Shown here: positions 1,307 through 5,555 of the stretch, piece by piece | Layout of the letters: every line of letters begins with the position of its first letter | How positions within the stretch are numbered: position 1 is the first letter of the stretch | Assembly (NCBI GenBank): GCA_964188305.1 | Contig: OZ076885.1 | Strand: one strand, 5' to 3' | DNA: 64,000 bases | Source: Podarcis bocagei | Lineage: Eukaryota | Notes under the pieces: model-generated | What the model was told of the DNA's origin: nothing | Seen by the model: only the letters and a program-made list of their open reading frames with translations | Databases searched by the model: none | Program-made: the position numbers and the translations under genes

Positions 1307-3400
1307 ATGAAATCAGAACAAACAACAACTTCACAACACAACACCTCTCAACCCACTGGAGAACAACAACCACCCTCCCAACAGAACACTGACCACCAAC
1401 TACCACTGAAAAAGTGTTACACAAAAAGGGACTCCACATGGACCCCTCCTGATGGACGCAATACCACACTGGACTTGTACATTGACTGCTTCCGCCACAG
1501 AATCCAAACAGATGTAACCAGAAAACACCATCGCTTACAACAAAATCTAAACCATGCTGAAAGGAGAGCCACTGATAATCTCAGAAACAACCCAAACATT
1601 ATAATTAAAGAAGCAGACAAAGGGGGAGCTATCGTCATCATGAACAAAACTGACTACATTCAGGAGGCTCACAGACAACTTTCCAATACCGCCTTTTACA
1701 CAAAATTGGACTCAGACCCCACACAAGAATACAAGAAAGAACTGAACAAGATTGTTAAGGAGCTACCCCCACACATCCAAGAACAGATCCTCACCAACAC
1801 ACCAACAGAACCTCGACCAGGAACTTTCTATCTTCTACCTAAAATACACAAACCAGGAAATCCAGGACGCCCCATCATTTCAGGTATTGGCACTATTACA
1901 GTGGGTGTCTCCGGTTATATGGACTCTGTTCTGAAACCATATGCCATCAGTGCTCCCAGCTATGTACGTGACACCACAGATTTTCTGAGGAAAATACAAT
2001 CTTTAAATAACCTTCCCAACAATACTATACTAGCTACTATGGACGTGGAATCCCTGTATACCAACATCCCACACAACGATGGTTTACAAGCTATAAGGAA
2101 CACCATTTCAGATAAAACCACAGCGGACCTTGCCACCAAACTCTGCCAATTTGTCCTTACCCACAACAACTTCAAATTCGGTGATGACCTGTTCCTTCAG
2201 ATCAGCGGCACAGCAATGGGCACCCGCATGGCCCCACAGTATGCCAACATCTTCATGGCAGATTTAGAACAACGTTTCCTAAACTCCTACCCACTCAAAC
2301 CTCTCTTGTACCTGCGATACATTGACGATATTTTTATCATCTGGACACATGGTCAACAGACCCTGGACACCTTTCACCAGAAATTCAATGATTTTCACCC
2401 CACAATCAACCTTACAATGAATAATTCTATGCAAGAAATACATTTTTTGGACACTACTATAAAAATACAGGATGGACGCATAGACACCACCTTATACCAT
2501 AAACCAACTGACCGACAAACATATCTACATGCCTCCAGCTACCATCCCAAACATACCAAACAGTCCATTGTATATAGCCAGGCACTACGTTACAGCCGCA
2601 TCTGTTCCAATTCTACAGACAGAGACTCTCACCTAAGAGATCTACAGCAAACCTTTTCAGAACTAAAATACCCAGCAGATGAAGTTAGACAACAGATCAA
2701 CAGAGCCAGACTGATACCCAGAGAGAACTTGCTGCAAGACAGACCCAAAAAAGAAAATAACAGAACACCACTAGTCATCACGTACAGCTCCCAAGTTAAA
2801 ACAGTTCAACGCATCATCAGAGATCTACAACCTCTCCTGGACAATGACAGTTCTCTTTCTCAAGCTCTGGGAGGAAGACCTTTCATTGCCTACAGACAGC
2901 CACCCAATCTTAAACAACTCCTAACCCACAATAATACTACAACCAGACTTAACACGGACACTGGCACCAGAGCCTGCAATAAACCCAGATGCCAACTTTG
3001 CTGCCACATACACCCGGACAACACCATTACTGGCCCCAACAACATCACACATACCATCTCGGGACTATTTAATTGCTCATCGTCTAACATTGTGTATGCC
3101 ATCAAATGCCAACAGTGTCCTTCAGCTCTCTATATTGGACAAACAGGCCAAACCTTACGCCAAAGAATAAACGGACATAAATCTGACATCAAGAATCACA
3201 AAACAGAGAAACCAGTAGGAGAACACTTCAATCTCCCAGGACATTCTATACAAGATCTCAAAGTAGCTGTTTTACTACAAAGGAATTTCAGAAATAGACT
3301 GGAAAGAGAAGCTGCTGAATTGCAACTCATTACCAAACTTAAAACAATGGAGAGACCTGGTCTGAACAGAGACATTGGATTCTTATCTCATTATACATGA
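1307..3400 (+). CDS. PLE reverse transcriptase - Cys-rich linker - GIY-YIG endonuclease (697 aa from ATG 1307; native N-terminus probably missing)
   Basis: RT motifs KEADKGG, FYLLPKIHK..GRPIIS, LATMDVESLYTNIP, GTAMGTRMAPQYANIFM, YLRYIDDIF, FLD and YHKPT..YLH.SS.HP. Linker CNKPRCQLC. Endonuclease NIVYAIKC..C..LYIGQT..LRQRINGH..E..GLN. No internal stops or frameshifts. Confidence 0.93.
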   Translation: MKSEQTTTSQHNTSQPTGEQQPPSQQNTDHQLPLKKCYTKRDSTWTPPDGRNTTLDLYIDCFRHRIQTDVTRKHHRLQQNLNHAERRATDNLRNNPNIIIKEADKGGAIVIMNKTDYIQEAHRQLSNTAFYTKLDSDPTQEYKKELNKIVKELPPHIQEQILTNTPTEPRPGTFYLLPKIHKPGNPGRPIISGIGTITVGVSGYMDSVLKPYAISAPSYVRDTTDFLRKIQSLNNLPNNTILATMDVESLYTNIPHNDGLQAIRNTISDKTTADLATKLCQFVLTHNNFKFGDDLFLQISGTAMGTRMAPQYANIFMADLEQRFLNSYPLKPLLYLRYIDDIFIIWTHGQQTLDTFHQKFNDFHPTINLTMNNSMQEIHFLDTTIKIQDGRIDTTLYHKPTDRQTYLHASSYHPKHTKQSIVYSQALRYSRICSNSTDRDSHLRDLQQTFSELKYPADEVRQQINRARLIPRENLLQDRPKKENNRTPLVITYSSQVKTVQRIIRDLQPLLDNDSSLSQALGGRPFIAYRQPPNLKQLLTHNNTTTRLNTDTGTRACNKPRCQLCCHIHPDNTITGPNNITHTISGLFNCSSSNIVYAIKCQQCPSALYIGQTGQTLRQRINGHKSDIKNHKTEKPVGEHFNLPGHSIQDLKVAVLLQRNFRNRLEREAAELQLITKLKTMERPGLNRDIGFLSHYT

Positions 3401-3553
3401 CTAAACCATTTCTCACCTTCCCACCCCTTGCCTTTTCCTGTAAGACCTATTACAGTCGTTAAGAGTCGTCAACAGGCCCATCAGGCTCATCTCAGCTATC
3501 TGCCAATCTCCGATTCCCACCACCCTTCTGAGTAATACCCCTCCCCACCTTCT

Positions 3554-3563
3554 CTATATATAG
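3554..3563 (+). promoter_or_regulatory. TATA-like box in the PLE pseudo-LTR
   Basis: CTATATATAG lies about 30 nt upstream of the hammerhead motif. Function is inferred from position only. Confidence 0.4.
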
Positions 3564-3589
3564 AAGGATCTGGCAACTTCTGTTTCAGT

Positions 3590-3627
3590 GTATCTGAAGA
3601 AGTGTGCATGCACACGAAAGCTTATAC
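3590..3627 (+). ncRNA. Minimal type I hammerhead ribozyme motif in the PLE 3' end (pseudo-LTR)
   Basis: GTAT-CTGAAGA-A-GTGTGC AT GCACAC-GAAA-GC-TT-ATAC. Helix I is GTAT/ATAC, the core is CUGANGA plus GAAA, helix II is palindromic, and helix III is reduced to palindromic AGCU. Predicted cleavage is after U3623. Confidence 0.85.
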
Positions 3628-5555
3628 CAAGAACTAACTTAGTTGGTCTTTAAGGTGCTACAGGAAGGATTTTTTTTATTTTGCTAATATGAAGTTCAAG
3701 TGTGTGTGTACATGTGGTGTGCTAATTCATTTCATCAAGGTTTTAATCTATAAAAGTCTAGATATGGTAAATGGCAAGAAAAGAACTGACCAATTTATGG
3801 GGGGCTACCTATGATCTGCCAGTAGCTGACATTCTTTCAAAGAATGCTAAACTTGCAGGTCTTATTCTAATGCAGCAAGACATTTCCTATGTTCTTATAG
3901 AAAAGTAAAAAGAAGAGAAATGCTTGTGGTATCTTGAAGACAAGCAGATGTACACAGAAAGACAAAAGAAATAAATAGTGAATTGAAATGGCACTCATTG
4001 ACAATTGATGTACACAAGGAGTGGGAAATCCCTGTCTCCCATGTTCCCCTGGATGTGAAGGAAAGCCTTCTTTGCCAAAGCAACTATGGAGAATATTAAT
4101 TGGCTTCAAAATCTGTCCTGTCCTTCCCTTCCCCCCTTCAAACTAACTGTGGAAGAAAGTGGACTTAGAGCTGGTAATATCTTTGGGTTTGTCCCTCTTG
4201 ACTCTTGAAGAGATTTGGGAAAGAGGTATGTTCAGAGACAAGAATGCATTCCATTTGGTCACATTTGAGAAGTGGGCCAAATGTGTCACTTAAAGGATAA
4301 AGGGACACTTAAGCCAACCATGGTCAGAAAACCCAAGTTGCAAATAATAATAATTCAAGGGCATAATCTTGTGTTAATATAATAGCAACTTATTTTTATG
4401 CACAACCATGCATTTACTGGAAACTGCAGAACTGGCACATACGCTCAAGCCTTGTGTCTTTCTGAAAAGACTCGGTATTAATTTCCTTCAATCCTCAGTG
4501 ACACTCTGGCTACAAGCCACAATGCTATGCGCCCTTAAAATAGCTTATTCCTGTGGGATTCAGTGGAACCAACGTTACACTTTGTCAGTCATTTCTATTT
4601 TTCATGAAAGTGATCTACCTATGCAGAGGAACTAGAGCAATTTCCAGCACCAGAGAAGTATACTGTAGTGCTATCCTGATCACGAAAATTAGGCAGCCGC
4701 ACCATGTGAGCTACTTGTTCACACAGCAGGGTATTCACATTACTCATGTGAGACTACTGCAAACGTGAGAGGACAGCAGTGGAGAAACAGCAGAGAAAAT
4801 GTGATCTGTAAATTAACCTTAAGTAAGTCTACTCACTTTGTGGTTTGGGAATATGTTTCTTTTTGTACCTAGTTCTATGTGATAAAAGTCTAATGAAAAT
4901 AGAATTCTATTGTATACAGATATTTTAAATTCCATATACATTTTAATTCCTATGCATCTCAAATAAAATCAATATATGATGCTAATTTTAATCAGGACTA
5001 CGCAAAGCTTCTCTGAGGCTTGGGCCAAAACTTTGCTGGTCTCTTCCTATCCAAGAAATAAGGCACCTATGTACATGGAATTCTATCATACAATACTCCT
5101 TTTAAGCCCCACGTGGAAGGCATGAGCTAACAGTGGTTCCTCGTCCTATTTAAAGCAGCCTTATTTCTTATTGCAGCAACAGTGAATTGGTTAGGGTGGG
5201 AAACCATTTGAAAGTGTTGTAGTTACTGAAAGGGAATTATAATTACCTCCTTTGTCAGTGGCTTTTGAAAAGGATCATGTAATATTAACCCAGGAAAAAA
5301 AGTTTTCTTACTTCTTCCTTAGTGTTTAGTGCAGCAAAGGTAAACAGTGGTCTAAATATGATAGCAATTTGACCCCACCTCTCTCTCTGTCCCAGAAACA
5401 GATGTGTAGTGCAATGCAAAGAGGTTTTCCATCACTACAATCCCCCAGCATCCCTCAAAACTGTTGCTGCTCTTGAAGTTCTCCCTGGAATGTCAAGTGA
5501 TAGGGCCATGAGAGGCTCACATGGAATGGAGAAACTGAGAATTTGGTGGGGCTGC

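Follow-up and report, generated by a model that had tools for sequence, protein, structure and literature searches.

The minimal hammerhead ribozymes (min-HHRs) of Penelope-like elements (PLEs) were defined by Cervera and De la Pena (PMC4209133) by their catalytic boxes, a conserved G10.1-C11.1 pair and a location in the pseudo-LTRs (pLTRs), together with a long helix II, a short helix I, a palindrome at positions 15.2-16.2 and the absence of loop 3. Members of the class have been reported from turtles and snakes and, among fishes, from Neptune, Poseidon and Xena elements; published examples had no activity as monomers and weak activity as dimers in vitro (PMC4209133). Dimer cleavage is credited to Lunse, Weinberg and Breaker (RNA Biol, as cited in PMC6765202).

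PAc, a Poseidon element of Anolis carolinensis (PMC11167929), and the lizard motif described here are both squamate PLE hammerheads without a stable helix III. The PAc hammerhead is cleaved only with the PAc protein, which is predicted to dimerise; either C3G or G8C alone abolishes the reaction, the combination of the two restores it, and the GIY-YIG active site is not needed for it. Catalytic mutations of this hammerhead left insertion in vitro unaffected, reverse transcription begins past the cut site, and at that site RNA-seq showed no read ends (all PMC11167929). Experimental cleavage has been shown for related PLE hammerheads (PMC4209133, PMC11167929). The Naiad and Chlamys PLEs, for their part, proliferate without hammerheads, and it has been suggested that hammerheads may simply parasitise PLEs (PMC8557442).

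Two further systems share parts of this design. Canonical type I hammerheads, found in satellites of newts and Schistosoma and in animal non-LTR retrozymes (Rfam Hammerhead_1, RF00163; PMC7229834; bioRxiv 10.64898/2026.07.22.740005), do not differ in their catalytic core, have a helix III that is unstable or palindromic and depend on dimers for activity; an origin from the pLTRs of PLEs, as non-autonomous derivatives, has been proposed for them (PMC7229834; bioRxiv 10.64898/2026.07.22.740005). They differ from the motif studied here in a helix III hairpin of 1-2 bp with a loop, a helix I of 6 bp, a helix II of 4 bp with loop-loop contacts and an arrangement in short tandem repeat units, all of which are absent from it. 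The CChMVd (+) hammerhead (De la Pena and Flores 2001, as cited in PMC4209133) carries an extra A between A9 and G10.1 that is tolerated in an active natural ribozyme; it is, however, a viroid type III hammerhead with three closed helices, unrelated to retroelements, and in this the present motif differs.

Here we analysed a 64-kb stretch of lacertid DNA (the window), in which the plus strand at 3590-3627 reads GUAU CUGAAGA A GUGUGCAUGCACAC GAAA GC UU AUAC, a 38-base motif. We consider it highly likely that this is a genuine min-HHR of an endonuclease-bearing PLE, carried as an inherited passenger, most likely idle, in a solo 5'-truncated copy. It shows no architectural difference from the published min-HHRs. 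Every sequence feature of the class (PMC4209133) is present, namely the boxes, U16.1, H17, the bulged A, G10.1-C11.1 as the closing pair of a helix II longer than the canonical one, and the palindromic positions 15.2-16.2, and so is the layout, with an open-ended 4-bp helix I (type I), no helix III hairpin and a position in the 3' region of a PLE with reverse transcriptase (RT) and GIY-YIG domains. The ribozyme class is a known one and this member of it is ordinary; the lizard family that carries it is not specifically described in the literature searched, and neither are lacertid PLE hammerheads.

Host insertion and anatomy of the motif

The 3' end of the insertion was placed at 3682-3685, where homology to two Podarcis raffonei copies and one Zootoca vivipara copy stops, and the 5' end at about 1312, from the start of protein homology to full-length Podarcis muralis proteins and the position of the flanking direct repeat (Table 1). 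The first three nucleotides of the direct repeat (GCT) may belong to the element, as the Zootoca tail also ends in ...TTTTGCT. Because the apparent start ATG of the open frame (1307-1309) lies inside the left target-site duplication, it is host sequence. About 29 N-terminal residues (MIQFCGDLEAFFRRLRLKEYF...) that are common to full-length P. muralis and Gopherus proteins are absent from the frame (the proteins compared at the N-terminus were P0123, P0124 and P0002).

Neither an upstream pLTR nor a 5' UTR nor a second ribozyme was found at the locus when the window was examined by self-BLAST, repeat finding, a structural descriptor and a covariance model, R1 (both described below), and the PLE copy is solitary within the window. 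A reading of the DNA made before our analysis, from the letters alone (the first-pass annotation), had counted only one motif in this copy, with which self-BLAST, the descriptor and R1 agree. It had also taken the locus for a compact module of RT, endonuclease and ribozyme. These components are indeed all there, but they do not amount to a working module, as the copy is 5'-truncated and has lost about 29 codons, the 5' UTR and the pLTR; it is a dead-on-arrival insertion.

Table 1. Features of the insertion and of its hammerhead motif, in window positions.
Feature	Position	Strand	Basis or remark
5'-truncated PLE insertion, lacertid, putatively Neptune-like	~1312..3685	+	homology limits and flanking direct repeat
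Left target-site duplication, GCTAATATGAA, at least 8 nt AATATGAA	1301..1311	+	direct-repeat search
Right target-site duplication	3683..3693	+	direct repeat, (GCT)AATATGAA, 8-11 nt, abuts both ends
Open frame, 697 codons and stop TGA (3398-3400)	1307..3400	+	ORF listing
RT domain	about 1979-2425	+	PF00078, 1.4e-12
Linker CNKPRCQLC (CX4CxxC), ORF residues 557-565	2975-3001	+	motif reading
GIY-YIG domain	about 3089-3235	+	PF01541, 2.8e-05
Helix I, 5' strand, GUAU	3590..3593	+	pairs with 3624-3627; 4/4 pairs covary across relatives
Core box C3-A9, CUGAAGA	3594..3600	+	C3, G5, A6, A9 invariant; G8 in 11/12 sequences
Unpaired A between A9 and G10.1	3601	+	A in 12/12 sequences; defining trait in PMC4209133
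Helix II hairpin, stem GUGUG/CACAC (5 bp), loop CAUG, closing pair G10.1-C11.1 (G3602-C3615)	3602..3615	+	
Core box G12 A13 A14 A15.1, GAAA	3616..3619	+	invariant, 12/12 sequences
Helix III remnant, palindrome AGCU (A15.1 G15.2 C16.2 U16.1), zero loop	3619..3622	+	invariant, 12/12 sequences
Cleavage-site nucleotide 17, U (U17)	3623	+	predicted scissile bond 3623/3624
Helix I, 3' strand, AUAC	3624..3627	+	pairs with 3590-3593
Conserved post-ribozyme tail, includes GTCTTTAAGGTGCTAC	3628..3660	+	88-97% identity in lacertid copies; alignable to turtle copies

As in Neptune-type elements, the GIY-YIG domain lies C-terminal of the RT, with a Zn-finger-like linker of the CX2-5CxxC form between them. 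This linker is given for Neptune and Nematis PLEs in PMC8557442, and by this shared motif the element appears to be Neptune-like. The CX4CxxC version carried by the window protein, typical of Neptune and Nematis, sets it apart from the clade of PAc, and the placement of the ribozyme differs as well: in PAc, a member of the Penelope/Poseidon clade, the ORF starts inside helix II and the ribozyme overlaps the coding region, whereas the window motif starts 190 nt past the ORF stop. Its predicted cut site lies 59-62 nt before the 3' end of the insertion. In both elements the cut site precedes the point at which inserted copies end, where reverse transcription starts, by about 60 nt in the window copy and by about 90 nt in PAc (PMC11167929). 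By analogy with PAc (PMC11167929), the segment at 3628-3660 probably belongs to the RNA region in which reverse transcription is initiated. The ~25 nt that close the element are rich in T and differ from copy to copy.

Low-complexity sequence near the insertion comprises short poly-C and poly-G runs upstream of it, at 553-566, 895-908 and 1201-1222, and a GT-rich stretch just downstream, at ~3699-3720. A perfect 18-nt inverted repeat, GATGAAATGAATTAGCAC, occurs at 454-471 and 3719-3736, with one arm about 840 nt before the insertion and the other 34 nt after it. As the repeat does not extend on either side, we did not take its arms for the termini of an older element.

On re-reading the window, all bases and coordinates given by the first-pass annotation for the boxes, helix I, the extra A, the palindromes and AGCU proved correct. 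Its designation of the motif as a minimal type I PLE hammerhead is likewise borne out, by homology, covariation, the independent model R1 and the published class definition (PMC4209133). Three of its readings were refined. The extra A is present as described, and is a hallmark of the class, invariant in 12/12 sequences, with nothing anomalous about it. The palindrome AGCU is also present, but its extent had been understated: because position 17 is a U in the window copy, the palindrome around it comprises six nucleotides (AAGCUU).

The third refinement concerns helix II. A loop of 2 nt being impossible, the 14-nt self-complementary segment GUGUGCAUGCACAC of a monomer forms 5 bp of stem closed by the loop CAUG, and this helix II hairpin has a predicted energy of -5.5 kcal/mol. 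The AGCU of helix III has no intramolecular closure and can pair only with a second motif. Helix III between two motifs has 4 bp and is weak; the self-duplex of GAAAGCUU was calculated at -4.9 kcal/mol, a value that counts two extra A-U pairs specific to U17. The U17-extended AAGCUU could let A14 pair with U17 non-productively. When the 111 nt from 3575 to 3685 were folded, the minimum-free-energy structure differed from the hammerhead, and the z-score was 0.03. We also observed that UUCAG (3584-3588) can pair with CUGAA (3594-3598) of the catalytic box; the local hairpin so formed would cover C3-N7 as well as helix I. This segment (3578-3598) is kept in the Podarcis copies and has one extra base in Zootoca, and its fold z-score is non-significant.

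Conservation and covariation among relatives

The protein closest to the window ORF, P0001, is 99% identical to it and belongs to a cluster that includes proteins of P. raffonei, P. muralis and Z. vivipara, by which the window is assigned to a lacertid lizard; the next relatives are from turtles, at 67-69% identity. A Logan contig of 98.6% identity (L001) ends at the stop codon and contributes no tail. Further afield, the ORF is 57-60% identical to crinoid (Anneissia japonica) and hemichordate (Ptychodera flava) proteins (P0030, P0052), with newt or shark proteins below these at 42-45%. The patchy distribution of these PLEs might reflect horizontal transfer.

Related PLEs found by way of the ORF carry the same motif in turtles, a shark, a crinoid and marine metagenomes. 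In the Gopherus sequence L002 it stands on both sides of the ORF (at 1343 and 4229, 2886 nt apart), with an additional inverted copy; it also flanks the ORF on both sides in the ENA sequence L006, lies between two tandem ORFs in the ENA sequence L009 and just upstream of the ORF in Anneissia (L007), and was found in Lepidochelys (L003) and TARA (L005) sequences too.

In an alignment of 12 sequences (A2), 94.2% of cells at the paired positions of the hammerhead are paired, as against 19-51% when the partners are slid by 1-3 columns. Compensatory changes were seen in nine of the ten pairs (helix I 4/4, helix II 5/6), with helix I taking forms such as GCAU/AUGC, UUGC/GCAA and CAC/GUG; G10.1-C11.1 is G-C in 12/12 and never varies. 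The invariant set consists of C3, G5, A6, A9, the bulged A and GAAAGCU. In A2 the core boxes are kept with few exceptions: U4 is replaced by C in two decayed turtle copies, and G8 by A in one shark copy. Since the catalytic nucleotides are invariant while the helices covary, selection appears to act on the ribozyme fold rather than on a sequence-specific protein site. The turtle exceptions take the form of CCGA for CUGA (core positions 3-6) in Lepidochelys and Chrysemys, at L003:8525-8531, at L004:4457-4463 and in an inverted L004 copy. As this change creates or destroys a CpG, it may be either a product of decay or the state of a turtle subfamily.

Within lacertids, the motif in L011, which holds two P. 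raffonei copies, and in L012 is identical to that of the window except at position 17. The first-pass annotation had proposed comparing base 3623 with the rest of the family, and the comparison gave C17 in the three other lacertid copies and U17 in the window copy; the 12 wider relatives are divided between U (7) and C (5). The natural C17 and U17 variants would make a tidy comparison for ribozyme assays. Identity to Zootoca amounts to 97.4% for the motif, 92.4% for the ORF and 52.7% for the 3' UTR upstream of the motif, and because the motif is so much more conserved than the upstream UTR, the ribozyme appears to be constrained in the active lineage. As a side observation, the two family copies in L011:1317-5541 are both 5'-truncated and lie head to head, with a junction at ~3408-3416; each carries its own tail and hammerhead, and such an inverted arrangement has been described as typical for PLEs.

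Pairing between motifs, the element's protein and the role of cleavage

Helix III would form when the AGCU of one motif pairs with the same palindrome of a second. In active tandem master elements, two motifs or two transcripts would, as the literature leads us to suppose, come together as a two-site dimer, perhaps with the element's own protein to unite or chaperone them, and this dimer would cut multimeric transcripts after position 17 (3623). We infer the dimer dependence of cleavage from the missing intramolecular helix III together with the literature. As the window copy is 5'-truncated and solo, with no upstream pLTR, promoter or second ribozyme, its motif is best viewed as an inherited passenger that still resembles the consensus apart from U at position 17, and nothing functional is expected of the window locus itself.

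As an alternative or complement to this scheme it is possible, though we think it the less probable course, that the ribozyme is protein-assisted, acting as a monomer or as a dimer held by protein rather than as a purely RNA-driven dimer. The need of the PAc hammerhead for the PAc protein, a predicted dimeriser (PMC11167929), speaks for this, as do the poor cleavage of min-HHR dimers on their own (PMC4209133) and the mere 4 bp of helix III between two motifs. However, A15.1-U16.1 and the rest of helix III would still need a pairing partner, and AGCU is invariant and palindromic in 12/12 relatives, which argues that RNA-RNA pairing is selected. PAc is moreover a different case, belonging to the Poseidon clade and having a hammerhead that overlaps the start codon.

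We regard as unlikely a second alternative, in which the stem-loops serve as a recognition element for the RT or endonuclease, or as a signal at the DNA level, and the likeness to a hammerhead is that of a relic or parasite unused for cleavage. Such a purpose would fit with the unchanged insertion of PAc hammerhead mutants and the lack of reads ending at the PAc cut site (PMC11167929), with the success of Naiad and Chlamys and the idea of parasitic hammerheads (PMC8557442), and with the conservation of the adjoining 3628-3660 segment. It fits poorly with the fact that the invariant positions are exactly the catalytic nucleotides of the hammerhead, while both helices covary freely, and with the experimental cleavage of related PLE hammerheads (PMC4209133, PMC11167929).

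Even with a cleaving ribozyme in the active lineage, its part in the PLE life cycle is debatable, given the PAc mutants and the hammerhead-free Naiad. With 59-62 nt between the predicted cut site and the end of the insertion, cleavage at the 3' hammerhead would deprive an RNA of its initiation region, save where a tandem, uncut or circular template is used. The natural variants at position 17, the constraint on the motif and the location of the cut site ~60 nt before the insertion end, a layout like that of the anole element, all bear on this role.

The palindromic helix II had been suggested in the first-pass annotation to help two transcripts pair. We did not find this upheld: the helix II loops of relatives are non-palindromic (AUUC, UGUA, GUUC, UGU), and the 14-bp duplex between two molecules gives a domain-swapped dimer without helix III. 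Lacertids have a helix II of 5 bp with a self-complementary CAUG loop, whereas relatives most often have 6 bp and a loop of 4 nt. That the palindrome is a functional dimerisation element joining two transcripts is, in our judgement, very unlikely. In its favour, the 14-nt palindrome is identical in four lacertid copies, its self-duplex is strong (-25.2 kcal/mol) and dominates the minimum-free-energy dimer of two monomers found by RNAcofold (-33.2 kcal/mol), which is the helix II duplex and not the helix III dimer; and one unrelated min-HHR from a metagenome, L116, is likewise palindromic throughout helix II. It should be said of this calculation that a helix III dimer with both helices I closed is non-nested and so beyond what RNAcofold can score. 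On the other side, the loops of all other relatives are non-self-complementary, 1/16 of tetraloops are self-complementary by chance, and the lacertid copies give no independent signal because the whole motif is identical in them. A helix II duplex puts the two AGCU at opposite ends of a 14-bp helix, and therefore leaves no helix III; such a dimer lacks part of the catalytic fold and is more probably a misfolded form. The palindrome is a lacertid-specific feature that would compete with the active dimer.

An elaboration of the same idea seems to us more improbable still. The self-complementary helix II, which is conserved in Podarcis, Zootoca and the window copy, would here act as a concentration-dependent switch, with hairpins leading to active AGCU dimers and duplexes to an inactive domain-swapped trap or to higher-order chains, so that cleavage would be gated against the supply of uncut template for reverse transcription.

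Detection of the class against background

The two boxes on their own are uninformative: a loose pattern of them had 7 matches in the window, with 8.2 expected from shuffles, and so no enrichment. A structural descriptor, in which the boxes are combined with 4 bp or more of helix II, 3 bp or more of helix I and a palindromic A15.1..U16.1, matched the 64 kb once, at 3594, whereas 1000 dinucleotide-preserving shuffles averaged 0.014 matches per window. A stricter version, asking for 5 bp or more in helix II, 4 bp or more in helix I and the bulged base, brought the average over shuffles down to 0.001. The covariance model R1 was trained on 11 homologous non-lizard motifs and run over the whole window with filters off; it matched 3586-3629 with 45 bits and an E value of about 7e-12, the next best match having an E of 1.1. 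No second motif was found in the window by either R1 or the descriptor, and R1 gave no other match below an E of 1. In metagenome contigs, the exact box pattern occurred at 120 loci, 10 of which pass the structural descriptor while 110 fail and are taken as chance matches of the boxes; the 10 were used for loop palindromy only and kept out of the covariation count.

That CUGANGA and GAAA merely happen to stand together in AT-rich DNA, as the unenriched boxes, the 110 failures among 120 metagenome matches and the silence of Rfam might be thought to suggest, is refuted by the specificity of the descriptor, the R1 match, the covariation in homologous positions and the conservation in lacertids next to far less conserved flanking UTR, and we give it practically no credence.

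The silence of Rfam has its own explanation. The first-pass annotation had recommended a hammerhead search, and of those we ran, the dedicated model R1 and the descriptor matched and the Rfam models did not: Hammerhead_1, Hammerhead_3, HH9, HH10 and Hammerhead_II gave no match over the whole window at the gathering threshold, and none at E up to 10 on 3300-3900. Rfam hammerhead models require a closed helix III. They also miss 8 descriptor-positive copies of the motif in L002, L005, L006 and L007, and because the models fail on the copies of relatives too, we take their silence as a blind spot and as no evidence against the motif. Annotation based on Rfam will overlook the PLE min-HHR class without a dedicated descriptor or model. 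The present case is in this respect a clean positive control, the motif having been recognised by eye by the first-pass reader.
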